From positions 14,384,001-14,448,000 of the forward strand of contig CM060731.1 in NCBI GenBank assembly GCA_030704615.1: 64,000 nt of DNA. Reading direction: 5' to 3'. The notes below the pieces were generated by a model. It made no database searches. It was not told the DNA's origin and worked only from the letters and a program-made list of their open reading frames with translations. Shown piece by piece: positions 4,082-64,000 of this stretch. The DNA comes from Takakia lepidozioides. Lineage: Eukaryota; Plantae; Bryophyta. Position numbers and translations under genes: made by a program. Numbering within the stretch: position 1 is the stretch's first letter; each line of letters starts with the position of its first letter.

Positions 4082-7000
4082 ATGGCGGCCTTCAGCTTAA
4101 GCCTGGGCAACACCCTCAGCCCGGGACGTCTACTTCCCCATAATCGAGCTCTCCACCCTCACACACACGCCACCACTCGGCTCCAAAGGCACCCATCAGG
4201 TGACCTTGGTGCTTTGGCGTGGAACCTCGGTGCTTTGGCGAGCTTCCACAATGCCTGTTGTCAGCCATGGCCGATTCAAAGGCCTTTCAAAGACCATCAC
4301 TCTGCCCGAGCTCAAGCTGCTACATCATGGAATCAGGAGATTTGGGAGATGGATAATTCGGAGAGTTCCTGGGAAGAGCCATGGATAGACTGGGATTGGT
4401 TGAGAGCTGGAAGATTGGAGGTACTGGCTATGGGGTTGGGTGTGGCCGCGGCTGCCTCTATGGCAGCAGCCAAGCAAGGAGCCGGAATTTCGCCTCTTCC
4501 TGTTTTCTCCCTTGTTTTCTTAGTACCTGTTCTAAGTGCCATACACCATCACGCTTTGAGAAGAAATTCAAGCTTTGCTTATAACGCACAAGTGCTGGCC
4601 ATGACCGAGCAATTACGAAGTTTGCGAGTTGCTTTGGCGCGGGTATTGGGTAGCGTGCAAACAGCTGTGATGGGAGTATTGGCTAGTTCCTCAATTGATG
4701 CACTGTCGTTCATACTCGTGCATCTGCGAGGTGTTCTCGGTTATCTCAAAATCCCGGTAGGTCTCAAGTCTGCAAATATTGTAGGTTGTGTGCAGTAATG
4801 GATGGGTTGGGGCGCTCACTCGAGTATGTGATGTCAATCAATTCTGGATACGGTGCATTTTGTTGAGAGTCGATGAACAAGAAGACATAAGGCTCAAAAT
4901 CATTTACAGTGGTAGTTAGCTCTAGAGGTGCAATAAAACAACCTTGAGGAGTGTCAAAGTGATGAATGCATGCTGCGCAAACTGCGTGCTGGGTTGTCTT
5001 AGTTGCATGTGCCGACCGAGATTTGCTGCAAAATATACAGGGAAGGTATTTTTTCATGGTTAGTGGTACGGAGGATTGTGGCCATATGATGCAACGATAA
5101 GCAGGTCATGGTAAGCACGCCATGGAGATCGGTAGATTACAGCTTGCTGGTAGGCCTAGTCGCAGGGCTAGCAGGCACTTTCAGGGTGAGAGCTAGGAGG
5201 GAAAGCAAATCGTGGACAATTGCTTACAGTGATTGATATGGAAACCTGGGATGTAGGATTTGGATTGAGTGGTGTGCGAATCCATTTTAAAAATTGGTTG
5301 TTATTCTGTTGCTAAAGGAAGCTATGATCAGCAAGGTGGTGTACATACGAGAATCTTTGGTAATGAGGGTCTCAGATGGCCTTCGTCAACATACCAGGCG
5401 AGGCAATGACAGCCTTCAAGTCTCAGAACAGGCCTTGGTCCATCCACAGTTGCCATTTGAGGTGGAAGAGCCTGGAAATTCAGCACGAGAGACTTCCATG
5501 TCTAGCAGCATGGATGTTGGGACCTCTGGTGTTGCGACAGAGCAAACAAGGGAAGTCCATGAATCAGGCCTTGACATTGAGGTGGTTGTAACTGACATTG
5601 CAAAGTGCGTCATCCAATTGGCAGAGGTTATTGCAAGCTTAGAGGGGAAGATTGCGAACATGGAGGAATTAGCTGAAAATACAAGTGGCATGAAGTTCTC
5701 ACAAAGTATCTCCACCTTGAAAGAGAGACATATTAGGGCAGTTTCCTCAAAGTTGGAACCTATCAAGCTCATACTTGACAATGAGGCTCTGTCTGTAGAT
5801 GGGAAGTCAATAACTGTACAAAGTTCGGTTGAGGATTTCTCATCAGAGCAGACTGATCCACGTTTAAATCCGACCTATTCGTGCCCCTCGTCACCACAGC
5901 AGCACCGAAGTTATGGGCCTCCTGGGAATTCTACAGTTCCACTGGAATTTGAAGCTGCAGATTATTTAGGACCCAGAAGTCAGTCTGTTAACAATGCCAT
6001 ACCTTCTGTCACTTCATCTCCGGCACAGGAGATTGCAAATGGGGGTGTCATACAGTTGACACCTCCCTTAGAGTCCGGACAAGTAGAAGTATATGAAAAT
6101 GTTAACCATAGGCCAATGTCTGAAGGAAGTCTTCAAGTTGATTTGTTACTGGAAAATTCAATGCCTGACAATAAATATGCAATGGCAAAGGAGGATGTTG
6201 GATTTCAACGAGGTCCAGATGTAACTACTCTTGTAAAAAATGATCTCATTGAACCTCTAGGACTTGAACATGAACGTGTACAAAGTTTTGGTAGACATGT
6301 CCATATAGAAACCAACAATTCGGAAGTCCTTTCTTCCTCTACACAACCAGGTCATGGGTTAGGTGGTAATTTTTCTTCCGCCCTGGAACTACAACTTGTA
6401 GCGGAAGGTGATTCAATTATTGGAAATGTCAACGTCAGGTTGGTGGGCAAAGAAAGCTTTGGGTTTGGAGGTGCAAAACAGGAAGAGTCTAGTCCTTCTG
6501 GATATCAAGACAAGAAAGGTGAGAAAGACATTGCTCTGTATAAGTAGGCAACTGTGTGTTGAGTTCTGCACATTAGCAAAAGGCTCAGCATTCTTTGATG
6601 GGAGGATCAGAGCTCAACTTTTTGTTTTTATTGTCAGGATTATGCAGCAAAGTAGGTGACTTGTTCAAAAGATGTCAATCAAATATTGCAGGTGCCTCAG
6701 AAAGTTACAGATACCCTGATGAAGCTCAGCGACGGAGTAGTGACTCAAGTCCAGTCCGAGTGGGGGAGCGCGTCAAGGATAGAACTGCAACTGGATACCA
6801 GCTTCCCTCAACCACATTGGGCTATGAAGATCAAGTTGAGCTGATGGAACGTGGTGTTGGGAAAATGAGTGAAGCAAGTGGCACGAGGGGGCTATTGCTT
6901 GAGGATGTTGAAGGGAAACCTGGATTACAGCGGAAGCAGCAGCATGAAGCTTACCATAGAACTCTGGCTGCAAATAGGAAGGGCAGTGGAGAAGCTAGGA

Positions 7001-10000
7001 GGCCTTATTCAGGGAGTGGAGGGTTTTCATATTCAAGGATTGGTAAGTTTGAAGATAATCAAGGAAAACGAAATGGCTTTGATAATTCTGGGGCTGACAA
7101 CCAGGGTGTGGTTGGGATTAGCAGTAGAAGTAGGAAAAATCAGTCAGTGGGAACAGGGGAGGACAGGGGGTACAACGATTACTTATCTGGATTTGGGAGG
7201 GGATTTAGGGAGAATCCTGATGCTGACAGGAATGAGCTTTTTCACTCAAGGGCTGGTAGAAATGAAGAGTATCTGCAACGTCAGAGATTAGAGGAGACAG
7301 ACAGTTACCCAGTGTGGAGCAGCAGCAGTAACAGGCAACCTATAGAAGTCAGGACAGTGTCTCAATTTGGGTGGGTTTCTAGGGGACGAGAGGATTTGCG
7401 AATAGCAAAGGGTTTTGAGACCATTGAGATTGAAACATCAAGGATGCCACCCCCCCAAGAGATGTGGGAGCGGTCCTCTGCAAGTAAAAGGAACTTTGAA
7501 CAGAAAGCAACCCAATCTGATGGCAATTGGAGCACTTCAGAATTTCCGTCTTTTAGCAGTGGAAGATTTCAGCGTGCACAACAGTTTGGTACTCCCAGGT
7601 ACGAGTCTGCTGGGGATGGAGAGCATGAGCAACTACGTGATGAATTAGGAGAGATGGGCAGATACGCAGTTGACGTGAGCAAGGACAGTGCACAAGGGAG
7701 TGACAAGTCTAAAGACGAGGTGGTTTCTACAGAACAAGAGGTTCTACGAATGGAGAAGCGCTTCCAGAGCACCAAGACTGGACTATCAACGGGACCAAAA
7801 ACCCAGGAGAGGTGGGATGTGCCTTCTTCAAGTACAAGCGGTCCTGAACAGAGAGAAGCACAATTTGATCCTGCTAAGGATGAGTCCTTGTTCTCCGGGG
7901 CTCCTGGGGATGAAGATTATCAACAAAGGCCGGAGGCTACTGTGCCAGTTGGGGTTAGCAGGGGAGGGGGGCGTGCTAGAGACTTCAGTGAAGAGTCCCT
8001 AAATGGCAGGGGGCCTGGGGAGAGGGCTCAAACCACTGAGAGGGTACCATTTTCCCAGGAGAATTGGGAAGTGTCGTCTTCGAGTAGAAGAGATTTTGAC
8101 CAGAGAGGGAAGCCCAGCCTGCGTGCAAACCTCACAAAAGCACGAGCTTTAGGTCGTGATGACAGCAACTATGACAACAGTAATGATGGTGATTATTATG
8201 GCAGGGACGGGAGGGATACAGGTGAATAGTCCCACCATAGTTGTTTTCTCTTGAGAGATTTGCTTAGCTGGTGCATAAACTGTACAGGAGTTAATCATCC
8301 AGGTAAAACACTTGGAGGGAACTCCAAGTGCACTTTGTGTGTGGTTGGGAAGCAAGGGGGAAAACAGCTAAGATCTCGGTTGTAATCCCTCTACCTCTGT
8401 ATTCACAGGAGGTCAATGGATTGGTTTGATTGGTCCACTCAGTTGACCTTTTTCTGAAGTACCTGCTTCCATTGCTTGTGTCATTTCTTCGTACGCTGTT
8501 TTCACCATCTAAATTATCTTACAACTGTTTCCTTCTTGGATTGGGTAAGGTTTCTCGTTCATTCTAAGAGAGGACTCTTGTTCAGGCAGCTATAGACGAG
8601 GGAGACAGTGGCAGGATGGCCAAGACCGCAGCTCAGATATGGAGGATGATTCCGAGAGAGGCATGGGACCCAATACACCCCGTCAACAAGAAACACGCCC
8701 CACAAGCTCCTCCTCAACGGAAGTATATGAGAGAAGTAAGAATCTTCCAGTGCTCAAATCCAGCAGGCCAGATGACGACAAATTCGAGCAGCTGCTGGAA
8801 GAGGTGGAGGCCTTGTTGAATGAAGGCAGAGAGGGGCTTGGAGGGCGCATTGAGGTGGGGGTTGCTGAGCGCATGCTCTATGAAGCTGCGGATCTGTGTG
8901 GAAAAGCTGTTGCTCTTAGGTATCCTCACAACTCCTAGGTAGACTTATTTCTTATCGAAGACCTACATTGGACGATAGAACAGGTCAGATTCATTGGGAA
9001 GAAAGAAGTAAAAAAGAGTTGGCTGTAGTTCTCAAGCTTGTTCAACAGGCTGGCAATTTGCGAGATAAGGATTTTTGGACTGCACGTTCCTGTTACTGTC
9101 GAGAAGATAGCCTATCTATTGATATGGGTTTCTGGGTAGGGTTAAAATTGTAGTGTTATTTTCTCCTTCTTGTGGCTAGAGGACTGAGTGGAGGAGTCAT
9201 GAACGGAATTACTGACCAACCAAGATTTGCCTCAACATGTTGGAAAGGTTCTAACTCAAAGGAATCTCCAATGTAGTCAGATGTCTTGTCTTGGGTTAAG
9301 CAAGACTGAGGGTTGATCTATGTATTTGTTTCTAGCTCCTGCTTTTTTAACCAATTTTTGGTGTACCTAAAATAGTAGATGAAAAAGGTTGCCACAGTGG
9401 GGCCTTGGAATCCTGCAGTGAGAAACCTTGGAACATTAGTTCTAGCCCTCCACTGTATTACTTTCATGATTGAACCAGGCTTCTAATTCGATACATTTTA
9501 CTTCTGTATGAAACCATTCATTCAGGCCCTCGAGTCTTGTTGGGGTCGGGCTATGGGGGAACACTCTCTTGCTACATGGGGAGCTGAAATTGAGACTCAG
9601 CCAGAACCTGCGGAGCATGCTGCCGGAGCCTTCCCCACAAGGCATAAATCGCCGCGATGCATGGGAGGCAGAGCAGGATCTGGAGGTCAATATCTTTGTG
9701 TTATTTATATCGTTTGGCAGTTTTTGTCTCTCGTTAAACCGTGCTCTGTTTAAGGGGCTCCGGTTTGATCCTACACTGCTGGATCTAAAACTGTGAGGAT
9801 TGACAGTTGCTCCTGCAGGAAATTTAGTTATCCTTTTGTTGGTGGTTTGGCAATGCTGGTACAGGAGACTAGTTTCACTTAGGGGAGTCAGTACCATCAA
9901 TGTTGCTCTGATTTAGATTTGGGACAGAGTTATCTACCGTTTGTATCAAATTTCAGTGGTAGCTTAAATGTTCCTTATCATGATGGTAACAAATTTTCTC

Positions 10001-12633: not shown

Positions 12634-15045
12634 TCATTCTACCTCAAAGAGGTTTGCCTCTGCAATCAAGTCCTCAGTCTCATCTAAGAGAACTTCTTCC
12701 CTATCCAAAAACTCTTTCATGAAAGTACTAAAGCAACCAACTCTAGCATCATTTGGCCAATTATTGACTACACTCACAAGCATATCAAGGTTTTCAATAT
12801 TTAACCTGCACCGTCTCAAGCTTGTTATGACACCTGCAATACTAAAAACCCTCTCAGTTTCAATCTGAGATCCAACTATGCCCAAGATTAGCCGTGCCAA
12901 AAATCTCACATATGGAAAGAAAGACTCGTGCTATTTCCACCATTTCAAAGGAGCCACGCACTCACCCTCAATTATCTTCGTCCTTTTGAAATGTGATAGT
13001 TGTTGTCTCACTACTGTCAATGTCATGTCTTCATTGTGGTCATGCACACCAAATAAAGACATCTTGTTCATCGTGGAAGTGGGCTGTGATTGGGCCGGAA
13101 TATCCGGATGTAAGACCTTGAAACACTTTACCAAAAGAGGCTCTAACACCATGTTATCATATTGGGACACAATATGCAAAGCACGCTCTTTGCCCACATA
13201 TTGTGATACCAATGACAACCTCTTGTAACGTGGGTCAAGCATAAGCGCGAGCATATTGTGAGCTTTGCGCGATTGAAACCCTTCCAAAAAAGAAAGAAAT
13301 GGTTCCAAGACATATACCACATCTCGAGCCATCCGTCATTCCAACAATGTCAACTCTGTTGAGAAATCCCCCATGCAATGATCCACAGTTGCAGCCCTGG
13401 GAGCACTACTTCCTCGCATGCGAATTGTTGTGGCAACGGCTGCATTAAGAGCATCGGACAACAGCCAAAATCCCCCAGATTGATTCATAATGCACTCATG
13501 AACCACAAGCCCTAGAACTGTAGAAATTGATTGGGCAATGGCCCACACTTGTGGACTTGGTATGCGAGACTGCAGTGCCAATGAGGTTTGCCTAGAGTAA
13601 CAAGTGATTAGGCTTGCCTAAACTCCAAAGTCTCTTGGAAGAGGATCACCTTGGAAGCAAACCGTGTCTTCACCGGAGTCTTCAATTTGCGGGGATGAAT
13701 GTTGCTGTCCACACATGCCTTTGCCCATTCTTGTCTCCCTTTGCCACTTTTTTTTGTCCAAGTAATGGTTTTTTGCAACTCTGATTGGGCATTTTTATAG
13801 AATATCTGCGCATACTTTTGCATCATTTGTTGCATACTGGCAACACTTGGACATCACATGCCCAAAAGAACTACCTACAAATGGAGAATCCAACCCCAAA
13901 CACGCACATGAGACCACCGAATTCAAAACATTGGTCAAAGTGGCCAAGTTACCTCCCTCGTTTTTGACGTAAGCAATAATGCGAGTATTGAGGCCATACT
14001 TCACAAGAAGATTGTTGACTTGATGTGCCATGGCAGCCCCAGATGTGTCAGGTGTCTCAAACATGTCAAGAGTCACATGACATTACTCCCACTGTTCATT
14101 AATAAAGTGCGCTATGATAACAAAAGTGTCAGTTCCCCCTCTTGACATCCACAAATCAAAACTCACAGAGCAAGTAGCACAACTATGAAGAAATGAGAAC
14201 ATGTAACGCTCTTTCGTATTCTCTGCCAAGATTGGAATGGCCTCATTCACAAGTGTCCGTCGAGAAGGGAAAACAATCCGAGGATTTTGCCTCAACACCA
14301 TCCTTCTTAGCCATTCTACCAAAGACAGTGGAACCAACTCCTTTGCAATGAACAAGACTAAATCCTCATTGAACTGCTTCTGTTGATCATCATTTTGGTT
14401 GTGTGGAGTGGAGCTCCCAAAAAAAGAAGCTATGTTTGTGGGGCTGGGCCTCTTTTTTGCTGGCGTACGGGCCTTCTCAGGTCCTTCATTTTCCCTCTCA
14501 ATCCACCTACGCAAAACAATGTCATGTTCTTGATCCACATGCTTTCGAAGGGCAGAGATACCATTGGTTTTGTTATAGGTCACAATGTCCTTCTTGCTTG
14601 CAGGAGTGACACCAACAGGATGACATAGAACACACCTCATCTGTTGTGGATTTGTTATGTCCACTGGAGCAGAATCTTTTGTTGCATAGAATGCCCATGT
14701 CGAAGCAGTGCGATTGTGGGGCTTCCAAAAATCCCATTGTTTTTCAAGTACTGGGAGCTGCGCCTCCACATCCAACACTATGTGTGATGGCGAAACTGTG
14801 GAAGATGACATTGCAGCCGAGGCTTGAGGAGCTGATGTAAATGAGGTTGCATGATGAGCATCCTCCGCAACATGGCACTCCATCAAAGCTTTCTCATTAT
14901 CAACATTGATGTCAGGAACAACTTCACTTTCTAGTTCATCGAAAATATTGGGCTCAATGACATAAAAAGCTTGTGGAACAATTCCTGTGTAAAAACAATG
15001 CAAACAAAGAATCCAAAAGACATTTAATAATTGTGCACAACTCAT
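12634..15045 (-). pseudogene. hAT transposase broken by stops and frameshifts
   Basis: BED-like zinc finger (MRCVLCH...LRKHVDQEH), first catalytic region SFDLWMS, KTPVKTRF, LMLDPRYK, PLKWWK and dimerisation motif SQIETERVFSIAG, spread over at least six ORF pieces. Confidence 0.92.
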
Positions 15046-15229
15046 ATATTTACAAAAGTTTGGAATGGTATATGGCTGGCCAAAACGAAAGTGTGGGGAG
15101 AGACACCGTACTGCTCAATTTATTATTTCATATTGAGCTGAATGTTACATACATGGCCTACATTTAGATCTGCGTTATTTTCTTTATATAGTACATGTAC
15201 ATTTACATTTTCAAATTACAAAAACTACC

Positions 15230-17080
15230 TAACAAGTTGGGGGTGGACCAGTCTTATGCTTCAGTGGTCAGCTTGGCTACTTCATGCCTTGGGAAATGAT
15301 CTGCAATGCCCCCACCACATATAAATAAATCAGTCCTTGTTGTACCACAACATGAAGAGTTATAACTAAAAATTATGAAGCTTTAAAGTGGGGTGATTGT
15401 CCACAAGAGGTAGGGGCTGGCTGTCAAGCCTTCTTGATATTTGTGCTCCCCTTTCCGAGTTCAAACTTTCACTATGAGAGGAGGAGCAAATCATCCCTCT
15501 GTTGTACCACACATTGGAAAAAATAAAATAAAAAACTAAGCTATTAAAGGGTGGGGGCTTACCATAGGATGAGGGGGCTGGTTAGCGGGCTCTAAACTCG
15601 CACTCCTCCTTCTTGTGTGTGATCTACATAGCAACAGAGTAGGGAGCTGATCAGCCCCTTGCTATGCCAATTTTCTGGGGAAAAAAAAATATGCAACATT
15701 GAATTAGGGGCATGCTTACATGTGTGGTGGAATGAGGGATGGTTGGCAGGCCTCCCTACTTGCCCTCTTTCCCTCCCATGCATGATCTACAATAGCAAAA
15801 GAGCAAGGGGCTAATCAGCTCCTCTTATATCACAAACTTAAAATAATTAAGAAAATAAAGAACAATGAAGGGGAAGTACACGCGGGTAATGGGGGTTGGT
15901 TGGCGGGTCAAGAGGCCTCCTATTTCTGCTCCCTTCCCGAGTGCAACATATCACTATGAGGAAGGGCGAATCAGCCTTTTGTTGTACCACACATTGGAAA
16001 GAATAACATTAAAAAACTAAGCTAAAGGGTGGGGGCTTACTACAAGATGAGAGGGGCTGGTTGACGTGCTTTTTTACTTGCACTGGACCTCCTTCTTGTG
16101 TGTGATCTGCATTAGCAGCGGCTAATCAGCCCTTGCTATACCAATTTTATGGAAAAAATAAATGAAGGGGGATGCTTACATGTGCGGTGCAAGAGGGGCT
16201 GGTTGGCAAGCCTTCCTACTTGCCCTCCTTTCCCTCCCATGCACGATCAGCCATAGCACAAGAGCAATGGGCTAACCAGCCCCTCTTTTAACAAAAATTT
16301 AAACAACTAAAAATAAAGCTCAATGAAAGGGAGTTACAAGCGGGTAATGGGGCTGGTTGGCAGGTCCCTCCCTGCTTTGGGCTCCCTCCCTCTCATGCAG
16401 AATCTGCCATAACAGAAGCCAAATGGGCTATCTTATCAACCCCCAATTGTATCAAGAATTAATTTTTTTTAAAGAAAATAAAGATACTTACCAGTGGGTA
16501 ATGTGGGCTGGTTGGCGGGGCCCTCCTTGCTTGTGCTCCCTCCAATGTAAAATCTACCATAGTGGAGCAAGGGGCTATCAGCCCCTTGGTATATCATCAA
16601 AGAAAACAGAAAAATAAAAAAATAAAAAAAATAAAAAAAATGATGATCAATGATTACCATGGACCAAGGGGGCTGGTTGCAGGTGGGGCCCTCCTTACTC
16701 GTCCTCCCTACCTCCTGCACCACATGCCATAGCAGAAAAGGAGGAGGCTGATTAGCTTCATGGTGAACTAAAGCTAAAAACAGTAAAATAACCAAAAGTG
16801 GTGGATGCTTACCAACAAGGGGCTGGTTGATGACGGGGCTGGTTGCGCGGGCCCTCCTGCTCGCACTTCCTCCCTCCAATGCGCCACTTACCACAATACA
16901 AGAGCATGGGGCCCATTAGCTCCCTGCTGAACCAAAAAAAAAAAAAAAACAAGAACATGGTGGATGCTCACCAACAACAAGCGACGGCTGGTTGGCAGGG
17001 CCCTCCTGCTCACACTCCCTCCCTTTGTGTCCACCACCTGCCACAACAGCAGAAGATAGATCAGCCCCCTCTTGTGCGAT
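15230..17080. repeat. Degenerate tandem array inside the hAT, upstream of the transposase
   Basis: More than a dozen roughly 120-bp units, each with GGGGCTGGTTGGC, then (T)CAGCCCCT, then an A-rich spacer. Confidence 0.8.
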
Positions 17081-18029
17081 AAACAGAGAAGAAAAGAAAC
17101 AAACAACACATTAAATCAATCAACCTAAGAGGAAAAGAGAAAGGAGATGGAGATGAAATGAGAGCGAGAGAGAAATCAAACAAATAAAGTAGGAGATGGA
17201 GACACGGAACACGAACCTTACCTGGACTGGAGTAGCGAGCAAGATGTATGCGAGAGAGAGCGAGCTGGATGAGTTGTAGAGACACTTAGGCCTACAGCCC
17301 ACGGGTGGAACCGGAACCGGAACCGCTTTAGAGTCCCCAAACCCCGGTTCCCACACATGTGGCCGTAGCTGGAACCGCCGGTTCCGGTTCCCACACAATC
17401 CCCAATTTCCGGTTCCGGTTCTGCACAGGCGGGTCCGGTTCCAGTCCGGTTCCACATAACCGGAACCGGAACCGGCGGTTACCCGAGCCCAGGCGGGTAA
17501 GCGCCCAACACTGGTGGACACCTTCATGACACACCAGACTGTGGTTTGAACCCTCAACCACAAAGGCATAGGTAGCCCCTAAGCAGTCTACATAACATCA
17601 ACATTCAGCTAAAGGCCAGCTTTGTCAGGACGATGCCTTCCTTACTCCCCTAGTTACTAGTACCCCTCAGCCCAAGTTGTTGGGTTGTAAAAGGCTTTGT
17701 AATCCCATAAGGGTTTGAAATCTTGACCCCATCCTCTGTGATGTTTGCAACCCACACACCAGCCACAAGCATCCATGGTATTAAGCACCACAAAGAGCAA
17801 GCAATCCCATGATGGACACATCAATCCACCAAGGGCTAGTGAACAGCTACATGGGAGTGAAATGTCCAACCAGGCTGGTGACAACCGTTGACTTGAATGA
17901 AGACTTGCAACCCATGTGGCTCAGATTGCATTGCTCAAGAGCGTAGGGCTAACACAAGAAACTTAAAAGAAAGAAGAGAGTACTTCTCTCTCTTTACTAC
18001 GGTCAGCTGCAAAATGGCAGAGCAGTGGA

Positions 18030-18957
18030 CATTTCAGGACTTCAGAGTGAATTCATCAAGCATGCTGCACCTACTTTAGCCCTTTTATAGCTAACCTCTT
18101 CAATGAGGTGATGCAACGGGGCTTTCCAACAGAGTGGACAAAGAGCATCATCCACCCACTTTTCAAGAGCGGTGACAGGCTCGCACCGACAAACTATCGT
18201 ACTATCATGGTGTCCTCATTACTTGCTAAATTGTTTGGGGCAGTAGTGGCCATGGAACTGGATGATTGGGCTGAGTCCTCTCGCATTCGTGCTGAGGGAC
18301 AGCTGCAACAGATCCACTATTGACCACATCTTCACTCTTCAGGTTATGGTGGAAAGTGCACGCTATGACAAAAGAATGGTCTATGTTTGCTTCGTGGACT
18401 TTCACAAAGCCTTTGATTCAATTCCTCGGGACCTTCTCTTCCAACGGCTCCATAGAGTGGAAGTCCCTCCAGACATCCTTTGTGCCATCTCTTCTATGTA
18501 TGAGATTGTCACTCGCATGGTCAACGTCGCTGGTGAATTCTCAGCCGAGATCCACAGCAACATTGGAGTCAAACAGGGCTGCCCCCTTTCACCTGCCCTG
18601 TTCAGGCTTACAATCTTTCTCCATAGATTGCAGGCCCTTCCACCCAAAGGGCTAGTGGCATGGGCCCTCACAACATCTATGAGGCTCAAAGCTGCAGGTT
18701 TCAGGAACTCCTGGTATGCTCGAGTGGACAGTTTATTTCAACGTAACGGACTTTCTACTGCTTTCCTATTACCAATGAACCCAGATGAGGTGGACATCAC
18801 ATCCAGACATGACCGCAACAGACTCATTAGGAGAGAGCTTATGGAATTATATGTCAAGAGAACTTGGAAGCTACCCAATCTCATGACAAAGCTCCACTTC
18901 TATCGAGAGACATTCTTGGTGCTCCGCGATGATAGAATCTTGAGACCAAAGGATTGA
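18030..18957 (+). mobile_element. LINE reverse transcriptase fragment (RTE-like), frameshifted and internally deleted
   Basis: Motifs WTKSIIHPLFKSGD..NYRTIMV, RSTIDHIFTL, FVDFHKAFDSIPR and GVKQGCPLSPALF. The YADD region is missing after this. Confidence 0.9.
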
Positions 18958-53436: not shown

Positions 53437-53827
53437 TTAATATAATTACTTTAGGGGTTTTTATATATGATAACATTGAGAAAATTTATATACATGTATA
53501 TTTTTAATTGGATGATGAACGCTATACCAGTATGTTAATTTTATGAAGACTGCTGCTGTGGGGGACATCAAAAAGGGCAGTTGAAAAAACTTCAAGGCTG
53601 TAACTTAACTTAATCTTGAGAGTTGGTAGAGTGGATGATATAATAAGTTGGCCCATTCAAACCAGCACGTTGTTCACACTCTACAACCGCGTGGGACCCA
53701 AACAACTCTCATCTCTCAACGGTCCACGCAAGACCTAACCTCTTACCTACCAAAGAGCTAAGTTACTGCACACTGGGCCCATACATTTTCTGTCTCACAC
53801 ATCACAATTATCCCATATGGTTTGTAC

Positions 53828-54524
53828 CAGTGTTGGCCGGGATGTTTTGAGCCCTCTCCTGGTCCGGGTTATGGCGTACTCTTTGAAAAAAATGGATGGC
53901 CGGGGCAGGGTATACCAATAGGTTTGAAAAACATCTGGGTTACAGGTTCTCAATAAACACATGGATTTTCTTGTGTCCGGTTCTCAATCTACCTGTTATG
54001 CCATCTTAAAAAATGTCGGTTCCATGGTACCGGTTATGGGATTCATCCACTTTTATTTATTTATTACTTTTTCTGGCATTTTTGTGTATGTGTGTAAAAC
54101 TATACACAAAAGGGCTATGGCATGGTGATAAGCCACTAGAGTATTAGTTGTGGGTCTTGGGTTCAAAGTTCAAAGGTTCAACCCTGTCATCTATCTCTCT
54201 GCCCCTCTAATACACTAAGCTTACAACTTACAACTATTGTCTTAGCCAAATGCCAAATTCCCAACCAATTAATTTCCTACTTGGACATTCTCATTAATGT
54301 TGTGCACCTAATCTCCCCAATATTGTAATTTCATAACTACCATCACTAACCCTTACACTTGTATTATCTAAATGCTCTCGGTATAACACCCTTATAATCA
54401 CTCTAGCCGGTTAGGAAGCTCGATTTTTTTTCCGGTTCCCTTCCATAGCCAGTACTTGCGGGGGCTGCACTATGCAAATAACAGCCGGATATGCATGTCA
54501 AGATGCCATACCCGGCCAACACTA
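53828..54524. mobile_element. 697-bp hAT MITE
   Basis: TIR CAGTGTTGGCCGGG / CCCGGCCAACACTA. 8-bp TSD GTTTGTAC at 53820-53827 and 54525-54532. ccgg/ggtt subterminal motifs. Confidence 0.93.
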
Positions 54525-56086
54525 GTTTGTACATATGCGTGTAGGGAATAGCAAAAAGGCCGTGTTATGGGATGCCATAAAAATGAGAGTTTTGGGCTGG
54601 CCTGGGGCGCTGCCCGGGGTCTAGACCATGGACCAAGCCAGGTCTGGGCCTGGGACTGGACGTCCTGCACCCAGTCCATTAAGGGAACTCATTGGGAACA
54701 AATTTTGGCTGTTGCCCGTCCTTTCCTGCTGTCCCGGGGGTTGCAGTGGCCCGGGCTTAGAAAGCCCGGGAAAGATTCGCTAGCCCTGGGTAAATATTCC
54801 TTGGACCCAAAGAAAGATACTTTACCCTGGGATATGAAGACACCCGAGAAATATTACAGACGAATATCCTTGACCCCTTTAACCCTGGGTTTACATAAGG
54901 CAGTTTTCATCCGTCGACCATGTATTCTACATCGCGTATTTTCTAGGTGTCTCGCGTACGAGAGCACTGCCTCTCTCGCCAAACAACAAAGGTGTCGTTT
55001 TTACGGAGCATCCGTTTTCCTTCCTGTTTGTTGGATCTTGTAAAATGTCTCTTACGAAACGAGGAGTATTTGGGTAACATAACAGCTGCTACGAGTTACA
55101 TTGTATTGAATTCCTCGACAAAACTGAAAGAGAACTCATTTCACCTCTCATCAGATACCAACAACTGAAGGTGTTATAAGCAGAATCTTTCTTAGAGAAT
55201 TTTCAGGGTGATTGTAGGACAGGTGGATATGACGAAGCTAATTCGAGGAAACAAGGGCTACTGACCATCACTGTAGATCCTCTATTCATGATGTTGTGAG
55301 TTTGGAAGGTGTACATATTGCACAGCGACGTGTAGTATAGTGGTGATTAGACAGAAACTTCAGAGACTGTGGCTAGATGGGGGATGTCTTACCAAAATCG
55401 GACGAGCTGAACAAAGGGAAGAATGTTTTCTCTTCATAATCACATTTTGGATGTGCTATAGAGAGTTTTTGCATGGCAAAGGTGCAGCTATTCGATGTTG
55501 TGCTGATGGAATAGTTGCAGAAAGTGGTGGCCCTAAAACCCACTGTGAGACGGGGCAAGACCATGGCACTGCAATTCAGTGATTTCTTGAACACTGGGGT
55601 GCTAACAAGTTGTATGTTGTACGCACTCATCTCTATATATAATGCCCTTCTCTCTCTCTCCATTTTCTCTATATGCAGATAGTCTTTCATGGAGAGAAGT
55701 GTCGACCAATTGATGAAGTAAATTGGGATCTTAAACTCTATTCCAAAATCTCTGATCGTTGGGTGGTCCTCAGGCAATAAGTATAAGTTTCAATCGGTGC
55801 AGTAATCATGACTGAGCCTACAAGCCATTAATTAATTTCAAACTGCAGCATAATGTTCAAGTTAAAAGATGGAGAAAGAATCCAGGGTAGAAAGTGCTAC
55901 TCTGACCATAAGATGTTGGCATGTGAGATCGAGTGAGTGAATTGAAACCCGGAAAGTCTGGAGTTTCTCTACGAAAGACTTGCTACTCAGACTAAGTTAC
56001 AGAAAAGCTGCTGGACACTGCTAGAGACAGACTGTTAGTGGAAGGAAGCCAAGAATAAGAGAAAATGTCCTGCCTCTGGACTAGTT

Positions 56087-56400
56087 AGATCCCTTTTGTA
56101 CCTCTATAAATAATTAGATAGCCAAGCTTTTGTTATGAATCATCATGGACATACTGGTTAGCTTGTACTTAGTTTGTACCCTTGTGGAGGTTCAACCCCC
56201 GCTGGCCGCAACCCTGTAATTCATTTTGATTGTGTTCTTTTTAATTTTCAGATCCTGGTGGCAGCTCTATAAATAATTCAATAGTCCAAAGTTTTCAAGA
56301 GATTGTTGTGGACTTATTGGTTACAAACATAGATTCCAACCCCGTGGTTAGGGGTTCAAATCCTCTTCCCGTAGTTCTTCTAGTAGTTAGTTTTGCTTTT
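56087..56400 (+). repeat. Two tandem degenerate tRNA-like / Pol III promoter units (period about 163 bp)
   Basis: Each unit has agatcc..ctctataaataatt, an A-box-like tggac.ta.tggtta and a B-box-like ggttcaaccc / ggttcaaatcc. Confidence 0.55.
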
Positions 56401-56763
56401 CTAAGAATGTTACTTGGTTGAATATAAACTCACCTAAATTAATTGGGATTAATAAAAACTAAGTAAATAAATATTTCTATCTTTTAAACTTAAATATATA
56501 TAAATATAAATATTCACAAAAAATAAACATTAAAATTGGTGAGCTGAAATTAAATTTTGTTGGTTGCCTAATAAATAATATTTACACTAAAATATCTCTC
56601 TTTATCGTGCGAAGGGTTTGCTTGTGGAGAATCCCGAGTGATTAATTGGATGCACCAAAACTACATAGAATAGACAGGGATATGAGTCACAAGTGTTGGA
56701 TCTCAAACATGAAGAAACATGAAGAAAGTTATTATGTGAGGCCATATATTTCCATAGATGCTC

Positions 56764-58245
56764 TCATACATGTGCTACATCGACCAAAACTTGCAAAGCC
56801 TCTCTACTAACATCAGAGTCATCTATCAACTCAAGTTCATCGATGTACACATGTCGTGTCATCGCCTCGTAACAATACCGTGAAAGGTACAAATGGAATG
56901 AGAAGCAGGCCACCGAATGCGGCAGCCTTCCTACCTGGGTTGCATAGGCCCAATCTCTCAAGAGGGTGAGATCACGAGTTAATTCTGCCCCAGTAGTTGG
57001 TAAATCATCCAGCACAGGCGTGCTTCGCCATTGTTGATCACCACCTCGTGGACCTAGGTCATGTGTGCCAATGGCATCAGGTTGCTCAAGGCCTGCATAA
57101 GGATCCTCGAGGAGATGGTTTGTCCACCTACACAACCAAAAAACACCATCAACATCCATCATGTGTTCTACCACACATGCTTCATCTTCAGCTTTTGTAG
57201 AGTGAAAACAAGGGGCTCTGCATATCATTCCCACTAATTAGTTACTTGATCAGAGATACACACTAACCCTACCCATGTCGCAGCGGAAGGGAAGATGCAG
57301 ATAGGGTTTCTGTTTACACGTCTTTGGCCGGCCTTCACATGTGATCGCACATCGTTGCGATGTATCTACCCAGCATTCCAAACAATCACAGGATATCTTG
57401 CCAGCCCATGAGCTGTATTACTTACTGGTACCGGGGTTCAAAACTGAACTGGTGATGCAGCCCTTGTCTTCATCACAACCCTTAATCAAACTTTCCCATA
57501 CACGTCACTGAAATCAGGTGTCTACAAAGCATCAGCCTCAAAATACTCTCATCACTGTGTTCCGTCGTTAGGATACAAAGGGCAAGTATCCATTTATAGA
57601 CAACAAAAACCGCAGGACTGTGGCTTAGGAGTAAGACATGGTCGAGAGACACAAGAAGATGTCTTCGCTGCACTACACTCACTACAGTGGACTTCATTGC
57701 TCATGAAGATTGAGAGACCCCCTACATCACATTCACAGACAGATCCACTCCTTGAAGAGCACACACAAGTGAAAGGTAAACAATGGAATCACAAATAGTC
57801 ACCTGCAATCAACCCTGGCAGGTTGTGGACTCCATTGGCCTGCAGAGGGAATCCATCTTTTTGGGTTTGGGGCAGACAATGAGGTCCACTTCTAGAAAGA
57901 GCATGCAAGTGGGCAGGTGTTTATTGGCGCACTGCCATTGTCTGCCAGCCATGAACCCAGAACGTCGTTTACTTGAAATTCAGACAGGAGGCAGGTGTGC
58001 TACGTGCTGCATTTGAAATGGAGTGATGTCCTTGCACAACTTCAAAACTTGACGTGTGCAATAATAGACAGAAAATAACAAACCGGGACAGCCCATGTGT
58101 ACACACTACAGACATAACAAAGGGCTGGTTGAAGGAGAGCAGAGATAAAGACGAAATGTAGAAGCCATAAATTTTATTTCCAGCTAATATATACTCAGTA
58201 CCAGCCCTCTACTACAAGAGAGGGCATACCATAATATCACACCCA

Positions 58246-58284
<39 letters not shown>

Positions 58285-61155
58285 GAGAATCGGAGAAAAA
58301 ATGTAGAAAGAATTGAGTATAAATCAGTGACACTAGCTCGAACTAATGATTGGCTCTGATTCTACAATATACTGCATTTACTATGCTGCTAATCCCGCAT
58401 GTTGGTGTCCCTCTCTACTATGAAAGAGGATCAAAAAGCTAGTAGTCGGGCGTACCGTGGCAGGCACCAACACTCGCGTGATCACAGAGAAATTACAAAA
58501 CTTCGGTGGCACTATACCAAGAGAGGCCCCTGGATAGGCTTCTGAAAGATTAACTAATTTACCTCATGTCCCGGCCACTTAGGGAGCATCTCTACACCTT
58601 TCCAATGAGTCATCTCTCATAGTTTCAGATCCCCCAATATCATTGCTCTACCTTCCACTAATCACCAACAATCTAGCAGTCAATCGCCATCTTTCCCCTT
58701 TATCGCAACCTGAAAGACTGCCCACCTCACTCTGCCATATTCAGTGGCTTCCCAGCCCAAAATAATGGACAAGAATTCACCCTACACTTTGTCTAATGTT
58801 CTAATGTGAAAATTTGATCTAGGGATGGGCTTGTTCATAACAATAATAGCAAATGAACACATGCTTCTCTGGAGGGTAAGGTATTACACCCGTGCAGGTG
58901 TTCGTACTCCCGGAAGTAACGCGCAGGGACATGAGAATCTCGATAACGATTGTTCTCATTGATTCTTCGCACTCGGTGATGGTTCCATGTCTCAACGTAT
59001 TCATCAACGGCTGCCTGGACAATCGGGATGTACACAAACAGAAATGGTTCCCGCTGCCATGGGTCATCCATGTTCAGAATACCATCAACCTCCATTTGTT
59101 GGAAACAGTTCTTGTAGAAGAAAACCACTCGTTCCCATAAGTGCCTCCACCAGTGCTCTATTCGCTACATGTCAAAACAGTCATGGAAAGCCTTGTCAAT
59201 TTTTAACTATCAAACTATCTTCCACGGACAACCTTACCATGGTGCTAACCCCCACGGTGCTGACCTTGTTGACTGTTGGGGTACTCACCTCACCCCTCGG
59301 CAGACATTATTCTTATGCAATGTGGGACATATATGTCACTCTACAAAGTTGCGAATATCTCAGGTTGTCAAGCTGCAGTGCTTTCATCTTCTTTATGCCC
59401 CACAAGAGCCCTCCAAACATCAAGGCCCTCTTGAAGTATACCAACTACAGTCAATTTGATGGACTACCAGTGGAATGCACACCCATTTTTCTCACATCTC
59501 AAACCTAGATAACCTTACAGCCCTTCACTTGCTCTCGTCATTCAATGTGCACATTTCTCCTCATTAGGGACTTCATCATCATAGCACCTCATTATGCGTG
59601 GATGCTCCTGCTAAAAATGGACTTCTAATATTGGCTCGAGCTCCCTCAATATGCTCTTTGATCAAGTTGTGTTCTGATGCGAAATCTGATCGAATCCTCA
59701 AAGGTACATTGTACTTGGAGACTGCCTCCCTGTAAGCTGTCCACAAATACGCTCGTTAGTGGTGCACTGTCATTTGGAAACTACAGCTAGTTCACTTGGC
59801 CAAAAAAGATGTGCAAAGTACATGGAGTCTTAACTATGTACCTGAGAAAATTGTCCCTGTAGTTTTGTCGCGGGCCACTTTGGCATACACCACAAAGTGT
59901 GAAGCCCCATCAATCCCTGCATGCACTCGTATTCCGAACATGTAAAGCTTGTCGTAGGCTGCAATAACATAAAAGGAAAAGCATGTTATTCATGTATGTG
60001 GACAGAAGGTGGCAGGTAGTCCTGCTAACTAGGTATTCGTATATAGTTTCCTGTTATTTCTGGTCTGGCTGTTAGAAAGAGCGTCCTACCAGTAAAGGCA
60101 CTATTCATGAGATCTCCCATGTATGAGAGTAATGCCTTACCTATTCACAAAGGGCTGACCTATAAAAGGCTAAACATTTTACAGACTCAGGTTGTTTTCC
60201 CCTTGAGGGATCATGTCCATACATTGCATGGGCTTTCTTTCATCCTAGAGGGTTGGATTAAATAAGTCAAACAATATGTCCATCTTTTGCGTCTCTCAGC
60301 TTTTATAGGATCCATAATCTTTAGGCATGCAGTTGCTTAACTACAGCCTCACCAAAACACTGATATATGCTGGAACATAGAGTTTTGTGATGTTTGCTCA
60401 TCCCTCCCCTTTCCAAATAGTAGATTGGACACTTTTGACAGCATTTTTGAACTACAATTCCATCACCATGTCTACAAAGAGTAGCAGATAGTGTGTAAGT
60501 TGGAATCTTTTCTGTAATACTCATTGTAACAAGAGCACTGTGGATGTAAGTCCATTGCAGTTTTCGAATGGCAGATTGATTAGAACGATGAGAGAAAGAG
60601 AGAGACATAAGACATCTATTCAACAACAACTATTTATCATGGTTCAATTCTATCAGATCTAAGGTTTGAAATCATTTGTAGCCTTGTAACCTCAAGATAG
60701 AACAACTACAGAGCAATGTGTTGTTTCAAACATAAAGGTCACTTACAATCTATGTGTCAAAGCCCTATCGGCATGGTGACATTGTATTGTCCCCGTTGAA
60801 GACATCGAGCCCTCAACCTTCTCTCATAGTGGTATGGTGATATGATCCGAAGTGCAGCTGCTACCTTGCGCTCAGGAACTCGAATGTTAAACGTTGCAAG
60901 GGCTGCCCGTACTTGTCTTATTCCCCAGTTCACGCCATTCTCATTGATGGGAAGCAAATTCTCAATCTTCTCACGTATTTCTAGCACAGTCAATTGATGG
61001 TATACGCTGAACTTGGACCCCAATATCCTACTCATGGTCCTTTCCAGTTGTCGTACATCGGGAATGGATAAAGCCTCAGCAATGTGTTTCAATGGCACTC
61101 CCTCCCGCAACATGGCTTCAACGTACTCCTCCATACTGACTACATCTTGCTCCAT
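56764..61155 (-). pseudogene. Intron-containing IS3/integrase-like DDE transposase with one nonsense codon
   Basis: Phase-consistent exons 61155-60747, 59958-59842, 59736-59588, 59164-58890, 57127-56764. Translation includes WGIRQVRAAL..IRVPERKV, GL*HIDSYDKL..GIRVHAGIDGASHFVVY, PLRIRSDFASEH, GASTHNERIEHWWRHL and ETWNHH. TGA at 60757-60759 replaces the expected Trp. The true start may lie further upstream. Confidence 0.88.
58249..58281. repeat. (CT)n microsatellite; similar tracts at about 20021-20042 and 49984-50006
   Basis: Directly visible dinucleotide runs. Confidence 0.95.
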
Positions 61156-62040
61156 CTTGTCAAAATCTGTTTACATTCTCATCATCCTTTCCGAGGAAAC
61201 TGCTTTGGCGAGTCAAAACAAGAAGTGATTGGATGTGCTGGCAAGAAACAAGTTGACATACCTCCCAGGCCCTTCACATGCCGAAGCCCTTACTGTATCT
61301 GGTATCTCTTGCTTGCTAAGAACTCTTCACCAGTCTCCACAGTCGCCCTACGCAAAGAGACCGCAATTCAATCCAACGCCCGGAATTCATGATAATGTCG
61401 ATCTCATGAGGTAGCAAGGCTCGGTGTACCCAAAATGAAAAATAGAATCTCCGATGGAGGTTTAGACACCTAAGTATCAGCAGCTTAGAATCCCCGCTTC
61501 TTTCTAGCCCTGTTCCAATACCAGCGCTAGACTTGTCCGACAAAAGTAGTTTAGATGGATGATTATAAGATGAATGAAAATGTTTTCCTTCATCCTCCGT
61601 CACATTATTGATTTCCTCTGTTGTTGTAGGCATTTGCTACCTGCTTGTGAGTTTGTCCAGAGATGTGGTGATTGATAGCCATGTAAGTGTTCTTGTGAGG
61701 CACAATTCTACTGTCAATAGGCATTTACATCATTGCTCTGGCTTATGAATTTTAGAATGCATGTGGATTGATTGTGGTTTGATGAATTTTAGTTCTATCA
61801 GGCAATAATGCAGCAGAGCTTGGTGAGGATGTGAGGCTCCATGATGTAGCTCACAGTTTATAATCCCATGTTAGAATTTGCAGAATTCAAGAAGTGCATG
61901 AATTTCAGATCTATCACTCTGTTGAATGATGCAAGTACTAATAGTGGAAGTAGTGAAGCTACTAGTGAAATTTTAGAGTCACACTTTACTTTTTTTAAAT
62001 TATGCCACTAGGCATTCTTAGAGGTGAGGGTGTTTGGCAG

Positions 62041-62128
62041 GTTGCAAACTATTTAGATCGGGCTGTAAGCGGACTGGGAAGACAGCCTTTGAAAGTCCTG
62101 TTGCAAGTGAACACTAGTGGAGAGGATT
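62041..62128 (+). pseudogene. Isolated exon of a pyridoxal-phosphate homeostasis protein (PLPBP/YggS/PROSC)
   Basis: ttggcag|VANYLDRAVSGLGRQPLKVLLQVNTSGED|gtaagt, with intact splice sites and the family motif QVNTSGE. No other PLPBP exons were seen. Confidence 0.85.
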
Positions 62129-62342
62129 GTAAGTTTCACAGGCCCTCTTGTTCTTTCTTTGCCTGCTTGTTCCTAAGAATTTGTTGTCATCTTTAAGCAA
62201 TTAGAGAGAGAAAGAGAAACATATACATGCCTTTGAAGATATATCAAATTTTGAGGATATGATTGTGAGAACTCATAGATATCTTCTAAACACTGGCCTC
62301 CATGCATGTTAGGAAGAGAATACAGCCTACAAGTATTCCAAG

Positions 62343-63332
62343 ATGGATAACAGGTGCCTACGACCACCTTCTTCAGAATACGATGAAGGAGATGGGCATG
62401 ATACCTTCACTCCTCCACAAAGGGTGGTGTTGCCTTGCCAAGGACAGTCTTCAAGAATGCAATCAAATCTCTCCGCCAGTGCATCTCCAAGTCATCAAGG
62501 TTCAAGGTATAGTGCAGAGACCGAGACATTTACACCTCCTCCAAGGGTGGCAGTGTTTCCATCCCCACTTCAGGGACGTGAGCAAGGATTTGCATTTCCT
62601 CCCCAATTTGGGGGAGCTTCGAGAGGCAGACCAGCCGCAAGTGCTACACGTACTCGCCATTCACAAATCTTCAACCGGACTGTGTATCAATTACCAAGAG
62701 GAACCATTTGGGTGCGCAAACAAGGTGGTACAGTACCCACAGTGGCTACTTGGCCATCTGATATTCCAGCAGTGGCCATGAGTTTATCATTAGAGACTCG
62801 GTGGGCTGGTTGTGTGTACCCATCACCTTTCACACCCACCTCTGTGGAGTTCGCAATTGCAAATGCATTTGCGCAAGTCCCACGATATGCTCATACCACA
62901 AGGCCAACCTACTCGGGAATATTCTACAAGAGATCAAAGAGGCTAGAGGGGGCAGGTTCACAACGGAGTTATTCACTCTTACCATTTGTGGCAAATCCTG
63001 GAAGCTTGTTTGGAATGGTTACATCCAACACGTATTTGGTGTATTGCCCAGAGCCTAGCATCCTACCAAAGGCTGCTGTTACTTCTTACATTGCAATGTT
63101 GCAAGGAGACATGCCTAATGATGAAGATGACAGTACACTGCCTTCACCATATGAAGACCAATTTCCTCCCTCATCATTTGTTGCATCATCATCAAGGGGA
63201 CCAACATCAATCCCATACCGCGCTGGACCTTCTACAGGTACACTATTCTTGATGCATTTTCATGAAATTGAACTTCCAAGTAGAGACCTCTCTGAATTAA
63301 TTCTGCAGGTACAGAAGTTTAAGCTCCATTAA
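62343..63332 (+). CDS. Unknown 329-aa ORF divergent from the IS3-like transposase; candidate element ORF2
   Basis: Long open frame with a Pro/Ser-rich N-terminus (repeated TFTPP.RV) and a globular-looking core. It may splice onward (GT near 63238). No family recognised. Confidence 0.45.
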   Translation: MDNRCLRPPSSEYDEGDGHDTFTPPQRVVLPCQGQSSRMQSNLSASASPSHQGSRYSAETETFTPPPRVAVFPSPLQGREQGFAFPPQFGGASRGRPAASATRTRHSQIFNRTVYQLPRGTIWVRKQGGTVPTVATWPSDIPAVAMSLSLETRWAGCVYPSPFTPTSVEFAIANAFAQVPRYAHTTRPTYSGIFYKRSKRLEGAGSQRSYSLLPFVANPGSLFGMVTSNTYLVYCPEPSILPKAAVTSYIAMLQGDMPNDEDDSTLPSPYEDQFPPSSFVASSSRGPTSIPYRAGPSTGTLFLMHFHEIELPSRDLSELILQVQKFKLH

Positions 63333-63542
63333 GAAGGAATCTGTCTCTACCAATCTGGTCGTGAAGTGGTCTCTATATACCCCAATAATTTAGTGAACTG
63401 CAGCCTTGTGCCAAAAGTGATGGCACTTAGTGATACCCCATCCGTGGCAGGGAAGAAGCTTAGGGAGTATATGGTTGGGCAGAACAGAAATATTATGTGA
63501 CCATTTTAAAACTCACCAATCTCTGACAAAACAGAAGGTGGA

Positions 63543-64000
63543 TGTCACGGACATAGCCCAGAGGAACTTACCAGGAGTAAATACCAGAAGTTACAAAGTT
63601 ACCAAGTTACCGAAAGTTACCATGATCTACCATGATTTACCATTACTTACCAAGTTATCGAGAGTTTACCAAATTACCAAGAGTAACTTGGGAAACTGCT
63701 CAGGAAGCTTCATTTGGAGGAAATTTCTCCATCAAGATATCTCTTTTGTTTAAGGAAGCTTCTCCATCAAGAAACCTTTGTTTAATCTTGAAAACTTCTC
63801 CAGCAAGAAACCTCCATAGGGGAAGCTTCTTAGGGAAGCTTCTTAGTAGCCAGTATATATAGGAGACAAGACTGGATACTCTTCAGTCTCGCCAGCACCA
63901 GTTCAAGCTACACTACAATACACCCTACGTAATTTCGACGATTTAGTTTGACGCTGGCGTTGACTATTGTCACTTTCGACTGTTCCAACCATTTTGCAGT
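63543..64000 (+). mobile_element. Start of an LTR (Gypsy-like), truncated by the window end
   Basis: Begins TGTCACGG. Short repeats AGTTACC and GGAAGCTT typical of U3, and a TATATATA box at about 63854. Confidence 0.6.

Follow-up and report, generated by a model that had tools for sequence, protein, structure and literature searches.

A 64,000-nt stretch of DNA from the bryophyte Takakia lepidozioides (contig CM060731.1, positions 14,384,001 to 14,448,000 of the forward strand; hereafter the window, with positions counted from its first base) most probably contains a copy of a class II (cut-and-paste) transposon of the GingerRoot/IS3EU type, lying in a moss-like plant genome and represented here by its left end and the greater part of its body; we put the probability of this reading at roughly 85%. 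The family placement rests on the matches of its transposase to the Pfam family rva_4, on its ends, and on the published descriptions of IS3EU and GingerRoot. The window copy agrees with these descriptions in all features open to testing there, and one relative, the locus L012 (L and P numbers denote related loci and proteins), agrees in the rest. A first-pass annotation, made from the sequence alone, had read the locus as a two-gene, IS3EU-type transposon of a land plant, and this is borne out by the rva_4-matching DD35E transposase, the TAYGG-type end, the 6-bp target-site duplication (TSD) of the complete relative L012, the presence of a second gene, and the moss-like setting. The same annotation took the element for a newly seen plant lineage of IS3EU, which does not hold, as GingerRoot was described in 2019 in Selaginella, lycophytes and bryophytes, with detection in 18 Bryopsida species (PMC6839031), and forms one lineage with IS3EU, with 99% bootstrap, TA..TA ends, 6-bp TSDs and no HHCC motif (PMC10045372). 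As a transposon, the window copy is thus a dead, ordinary and possibly incomplete member of a superfamily already on record for bryophytes; it is broken and adds nothing new. The part possibly worth following is its passenger gene, discussed below.

The transposase gene lies on the minus strand and consists of five exons that add up to 1314 nt (409+117+149+275+364), i.e., 437 codons and a stop. They are separated by introns of 788, 105, 423 and 1762 nt (3.1 kb in total), all four of which are GT..AG with the exons in phase; the acceptor of exon 5 (tgtgtag/g), for instance, is in phase with exon 4. The exon structure proposed at first pass is thereby confirmed, and the exons are collinear with those of relatives. 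The gene comprises the following features:

60747-61155, minus strand: transposase exon 1, an all-helical N-terminal region ending in L*HID with the catalytic D136; 52-54% amino-acid identity to L001 and L012.
60757-60759, minus strand: in-frame TGA at codon 133, the sole lesion seen in the reading frame; relatives have Trp.
59842-59958, minus strand: transposase exon 2, matching Pfam rva_4 (E 0.0045, profile positions 18-51); 62-73% amino-acid identity to relatives.
59588-59736, minus strand: transposase exon 3, with RIRSD and the catalytic D193, matching rva_4 (E 1.1e-5, profile positions 53-103); 50-56% amino-acid identity to relatives.
58890-59164, minus strand: transposase exon 4, with RIE, the catalytic E228 and WNHH, matching rva_4 (E 1.2e-8, profile positions 119-172).
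56764-57127, minus strand: transposase exon 5, the C-terminal region, with the TGA stop at 56766-56764; 38-45% amino-acid identity to relatives.

The window transposase was queried exon by exon in every search. Exons 2, 3 and 4 match the rva_4 profile (PF24764, "integrase core domain") in order, and so are collinear on a single profile. No window exon matches rve at E<=1 in Pfam, the only related match being to rve_2 at 0.018. The catalytic triad that had been proposed, together with WNHH in exon 4, is present: D136 (H-I-D, 60756-60748), D193 (R-S-D) and E228 (R-I-E) are spaced by 57 and 35 residues, which makes the enzyme of the DD35E type. A 35-residue distance between Asp and Glu is typical for integrase-type enzymes. 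The single TGG-to-TGA change noted at first pass is also there (60759-60757), so that the window reads L-stop-H-I-D where all relatives, such as P0001 and L001, read L-W-H-I-D.

The earlier description of the N-terminus as helix-turn-helix (HTH)-like fares less well. The AF2 model of exon 1 is made of helices throughout (pLDDT 68), in line with that description; the HTH assignment itself is only weakly indicated, by a Pfam HTH_AraC match under its cut-off (E 0.0012) and by AraC-type double-HTH domains among the best fold matches of the model (TM 0.30-0.38, E >1), while a Foldseek comparison of exon 1 with the PDB gave nothing significant. An HHCC zinc-binding motif is not possible in this exon, because it contains a single Cys.

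Relatives of the transposase support both the gene model and its assignment to a mobile family. A word search with exon 4 returned two proteins at 62% identity, P0001 and P0002, and with the loci fetched subsequently the identity over this exon is 62-64%. P0001 is encoded on L001, a 2.4-kb Logan contig (identical in two runs) that joins exons 1 to 4 in a single frame, still contains the last intron and skips part of exon 3, as would be expected of a partly spliced transcript from a related copy. Members of the P0002 cluster are found on long contigs, from which the loci L004-L013 were fetched. The five exons occur in the same order in L004-L013, L016 and L017, and L001 and the genomic copies L003-L013, L016 and L017 are collinear with all five window exons. 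These relatives match rva_4 at 1e-17 to 1e-24, and rve only below threshold (E 0.0012-0.016); a PDB sequence search with P0001 returned nothing. For both genes, the moss Ceratodon purpureus and long contigs carrying plant-type genes (Plant_tran, TAXi, Copia elements) supply the nearest relatives, which accords with an origin from a moss or another bryophyte.

Comparison with these copies also bears on the age of the introns, which the first-pass annotation had taken as a sign of long residence. Three intron positions (e1/e2, e3/e4 and e4/e5) are common to the window and to relatives from other sources; the introns thus belong to the gene of the family and give no information on the length of residence at this locus. 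The e2/e3 intron is absent from the relatives, which have an additional intron within exon 1, and the window introns are 4 to 17 times longer than theirs.

Of note, the L001 sequence (574-2100) carries an in-frame stop in exon 1, and RVRSK replaces its second catalytic Asp, which points to continued transcription of dead copies in that species. L017 (2602-6939) has two tandem transposase genes upstream of one accessory gene, the first of them with an 8-residue unit (EHGALPIR) expanded fourfold in tandem within exon 1, and adjoins a full Copia-type polyprotein gene (14042-18088).

The second line of evidence is provided by the end of the element. Downstream of the transposase gene, the window contains:

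54566-54580, plus strand: left terminus TATGGGATGCCATAA, 13 of its 15 bases matching the terminus TATGGAATGCCAAAA of relatives (both ends of L012, L013, both ends of L016).
54542-54565, plus strand: a second terminus-like 24-mer TAGGGAATAGCAAAAAGGCCGTGT, 16/20 to the relatives' 20-nt terminal consensus, starting with TAGGG and not TATGG.
54600-54900, plus strand: cluster of subterminal CCCGGG/CCYGGG repeats, with 14 CCNGGG in 54500-55000.
54581-56763, minus strand: non-coding stretch of 2.2 kb between the end and the transposase stop, without Pfam match and without similarity to relatives.

The TATGG at 54566 lies 2198 bp beyond the transposase stop, and this position is the sole match in the 64-kb window to TATGGAATGCCA at one mismatch or fewer. 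It agrees with the TAYGG of the IS3EU end signature, TAYGG..CCRTA with 6-bp TSDs (PMC12730594); the right end is not in the window. The repeat cluster just inside it stands out from the rest of the window, where every other 500-bp bin holds four CCNGGG or fewer, and it is a probable transposase-binding region. A similar arrangement is found in L012 and L016, where CCCGGGRAAGAT occurs three times with 21-bp spacing, 41-83 nt from the termini; the window has CCCGGGAAAGAT at 54765.

Among the relatives, L012 is a complete element, with ends TATGGAATGCCAAAAGGG...CCATA, terminal inverted repeats (TIRs) of 1108 bp at 93.8% identity, and the 6-bp TSD GTGCTC on both sides, and it encloses the transposase together with a homologue of the second open reading frame (ORF) of the window. 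L016 has near-identical TATGGAATGCCA ends at L016:5092 and L016:14955 (TATGG...CCATA), between which lie its transposase, its homologue of that ORF and a HECT block; its flanks differ (TTTTTG versus CTTCCG), perhaps because copies recombined or the duplication has mutated. One such TATGG end is present in L013. The left flank of the window copy is CCGTGT, or TGCGTG if the end is at 54542. A first-pass proposal of a TATGG end about 2.2 kb downstream, with CCCGGG repeats, is thus supported by the termini of relatives, with its exact boundary left uncertain by the 24-mer.

The possibility that the element reaches further left, to about 53816, where TATGG and CCGG motifs recur, was also considered. 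It was rejected because the CCCGGG cluster sits 35-335 nt inside 54566, as in relatives, and because real repeat similarity is absent across the junction. The stretch 53816-54540 itself has a 16-nt inverted repeat at its borders (53826-53841 and 54511-54526) and TATGG and CCGG motifs scattered in both orientations; it may be what is left of a small non-autonomous element from the same superfamily.

The second gene of the element is represented in the window by a single ORF, divergent from the transposase gene:

62343-63332, plus strand: 329-aa ORF, predicted N-terminal exon of an accessory gene, with a conserved core at 62607-63140.

This ORF has no Pfam, NCBIfam or word-search match, and its Atlas feature score is only 0.76. 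Exhaustive HMMER comparison with 1.84 billion proteins nevertheless gave 20 relatives at E<=1e-3, the best at 8.3e-55 and 48% identity; one of them is a hypothetical protein of C. purpureus. The genomic context of the homologues is more telling. In L012 and L016, the homologue is found downstream of the transposase, inside the TIR-bounded element and between the TATGG ends, respectively, and in L017 it follows the two tandem transposase copies; in all three it lies 1.4-2.8 kb from an rva_4 transposase gene. At four loci (L012, L016 and L017, which carry a transposase, and L015), two further blocks lie downstream of the homologous block on its strand, first a conserved middle block and then a HECT block. 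The latter is recognized by Pfam HECT (PF00632) in L017 (6e-11) and L016 (7.5e-5); the block of L012 is homologous, yet below Pfam detection. An uninterrupted 446-aa ORF in L014 covers the N-terminal domain and reaches into the first part of the middle block, showing that these two belong to one gene. Judged by these homologies, the 329-aa ORF is the N-terminal, first exon of a HECT-type accessory gene of these elements. The first-pass annotation was therefore right that the ORF is real and divergent, and mistaken in calling it unrelated, its relatives leading into a HECT gene.

The accessory gene appears to be maintained. The ratio of nonsynonymous to synonymous substitution (dN/dS, by Nei-Gojobori on ungapped blocks) between L016 and L012 is 0.26 for the N-terminal, 0.18 for the middle and 0.14 for the HECT block, similar to the 0.05-0.20 found for transposase blocks between L012 and L013. 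As for what the N-terminal part may do, an AF2 model of the core (62607-63140), built on a 21-sequence alignment, reached a pLDDT of 87 and a pTM of 0.78. Foldseek returned nothing below E 0.27 for this domain. With the exhaustive structural comparison VIA-align, nearly all of the 50 best matches were ubiquitin-like beta-grasp domains, including the TBK1 ULD, UBLCP1, plexin and FERM F1, at Z scores of only 5.2-7.4. For this domain of about 150 aa a ubiquitin-like fold is thus suggestive only.

Together, these data lead us to propose, tentatively and at a little under even odds, that moss GingerRoot/IS3EU elements carry their own E3 ligase gene (ubiquitin-like, middle and HECT blocks), which is under purifying selection and favours transposition or escape from silencing. 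Within the searchable library, no paper was found on this ligase gene or joining HECT with IS3EU, and the GingerRoot paper (PMC6839031) mentions ubiquitin or HECT zero times. What is added here is that the N-terminal domain belongs to the HECT gene, is conserved, and folds as a probable ubiquitin-like domain. If the proposal is true, a ligase carried and maintained by a DNA transposon would add a new case in which a mobile element supplies its own means of manipulating the host, under a constraint similar to that on the transposase.

Several observations weigh against the reading of the locus as a GingerRoot/IS3EU element. The terminal match is short, a 12-mer with one mismatch or fewer being expected 0.47 times by chance per window, and the comparison over 32 terminal nt (21/32 at 54566 versus 20/32 elsewhere) is not clearly above background; the match draws its weight from being located at the exact base picked from independent features. 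The 24-mer at 54542-54565 makes the boundary uncertain by 24 bp; it resembles the terminus of relatives more than 54566 does, in spite of its TAGGG start, and could be a terminal duplication, the tip of an older copy into which the element inserted, or the actual end. Only one end lies in the window, where repeat search, self-blastn and pattern search found no inverted partner of the left end (54566-54900). The two genes are divergent, versus tandem on one strand in L012, L016 and L017, and while the TIR adjoins the transposase ATG in L012, no left-end copy is present upstream of the ATG in the window. Finally, the window ends at base 64000 without a middle or HECT block after the 329-aa ORF. 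This last point is where a one-ended fragment comes in, with an accessory gene truncated near 63.3-63.6 kb by insertion or deletion and a right end that is gone. Such a state, which would refine the transposon reading and not oppose it, is to be taken seriously, although we consider it unlikely. It would account for the lack of a middle or HECT block in 63333-64000, given that the next conserved block of the relatives starts about 350 nt after the N-terminal block; repeats and a TATA-like stretch at 63582-63846 resemble another element, and GingerRoot ends in Selaginella are mostly unpaired (PMC6839031). However, the next exon may simply fall past base 64000, since window introns are so much longer (4 to 17 times) than those of relatives, and no foreign-element boundary was identified.

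The remaining alternatives question the nature of the genes themselves. That the 329-aa ORF is a separate host gene, or part of a different transposon, placed beside the transposase by chance would agree with its orientation relative to the transposase, which differs between the window and the relatives, and with the L015 homologue of C. purpureus, which has a HECT block and no transposase within 10 kb. We consider this improbable: the homologues of L012, L016 and L017 are all 1.4-2.8 kb from an rva_4 transposase, in L012 and L016 between TATGG ends, and repeated chance adjacency is unlikely in a family so rare (20 representatives among 1.84 billion proteins). Even less credible is a domesticated, host-retained integrase-type gene. 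A multi-exon gene that keeps all three catalytic residues could suggest one, but its catalytic core carries a nonsense codon, it is followed at 2.2 kb by a transposon terminus and its subterminal repeats, and its relatives are parts of TIR-bounded elements, of which one has a TSD. The integrase-type DD35E core and the weak, sub-threshold rve matches of the relatives (E 0.0012-0.016) could also recall a Ginger1/Ginger2 element or the integrase remnant of a long terminal repeat (LTR) retrotransposon. This origin is the least probable of all, as the core exons match rva_4 with no window exon on rve at E<=1, the ends are TA and not TG..CA, no HHCC motif is found, and no gag, reverse transcriptase or LTR is adjacent. 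A GingerRoot/IS3EU transposon thus remains the best explanation of the locus.

By analogy with other IS3EU elements, the transposase of such a copy would bind the terminal and subterminal repeats via its helical N-terminal region, cut at the TA ends, and integrate with a 6-bp staggered cut. Owing to its nonsense codon, the window copy would make no full-length transposase of its own and would be mobile only with transposase supplied by an intact copy. The rest of its accessory gene and its right end would lie beyond base 64000, or have been lost.

Between and beyond the two genes, a few further features were recorded:

61156-62342, no strand: region of 1.2 kb between the two divergent genes (between the two ATGs), without similarity to relatives and without a copy of the left end.
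62023-62133, plus strand: YggS/PLPHP-like single-exon fragment, ending in VANYLDRAVSGLGRQPLKVLLQVNTSGED followed by a GT donor.

The latter piece gave TIGR00044 as its sole, weak NCBIfam match (E 0.22, profile positions 106-135), and the three named Atlas clusters that score best for it (0.83-0.86) are all Ala_racemase_N. Neither further exons of a YggS-like gene in the window nor any hit in a PDB sequence search were found, and the element may have picked up the piece, between its two genes, from a host gene. On the far side of the 329-aa ORF, position 63542, given at first pass as the end of the element, marks nothing identifiable. Short tandem repeats (TTACCAAGT-type units, and GGGAAGCTTCTTA twice) followed by a TATA-like stretch occupy 63582-63846 and may belong to another inserted element that interrupts the accessory gene.

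The homologue of C. purpureus chromosome V (L015:9767-12459) comprises the N-terminal, middle and HECT blocks, with no transposase within 10 kb, and only its first part is annotated, as the hypothetical protein KAG0572212; the locus could represent part of a transposon or a copy kept by the host. Elsewhere in the window, no second copy of the element and no Rfam match were found. Two long ORFs of 417 and 544 aa without Pfam match lie at 5294-8229 on the plus strand, in a region of unusually high GC skew (0.24 in 6001-8000), and an ORF with a reverse-transcriptase domain (RVT_1, E 4.5e-12) at 18262-18957 on the same strand is probably a non-LTR retroelement remnant.

The closest known system is GingerRoot, described in Selaginella lepidophylla and bryophytes (Cerbin et al. 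2019, PMC6839031). It is likewise a plant DNA transposon with an integrase-related DDE transposase; its 5'-TA ends have a counterpart in the left end of the window copy and in both ends of L012 and L016. It occurs in mosses, has a 6-bp, GC-rich TSD like the GTGCTC of L012, and tends to carry gene fragments, of which the YggS-like piece of the window is a possible instance. The published TIRs are, however, 100-150 bp long versus 1.1 kb in L012, and the present moss elements, which we liken to GingerRoot by its published description, have a conserved HECT-type gene. The IS3EU elements of rust fungi that carry TET/JBP genes (Kojima 2025, PMC12730594; Kojima and Bao 2023, PMC10045372) have TAYGG..CCRTA ends, which the TATGG of the window and both ends of L012 and L016 resemble, a 6-bp TSD as in L012, and, like the window copy, no HHCC. 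They also have accessory genes beside the transposase: fungal IS3EU families carry a TET/JBP gene and an alpha-kinase gene, the latter opposite in direction to the transposase (PMC12730594), like the accessory gene of the window. They differ in that the host of the window copy is a moss-like plant, that its accessory gene would combine a ubiquitin-like domain with a HECT ligase in place of TET/JBP or alpha-kinase, and that its transposase gene has four introns, 3.1 kb in total. Bacterial IS3/IS481 transposases and retroviral-type integrases are more distant counterparts. They have in common with the window transposase a DD35E core preceded by a helical, probably DNA-binding N-terminal region, whereas the gene of the window is eukaryotic and spliced, without ribosomal frameshift, matches rva_4 and not rve, and has TA instead of TG..CA ends. 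Among these systems, it is the TET/JBP genes of fungal IS3EU elements that a transposon-encoded ligase acting on host or transposon proteins would parallel.

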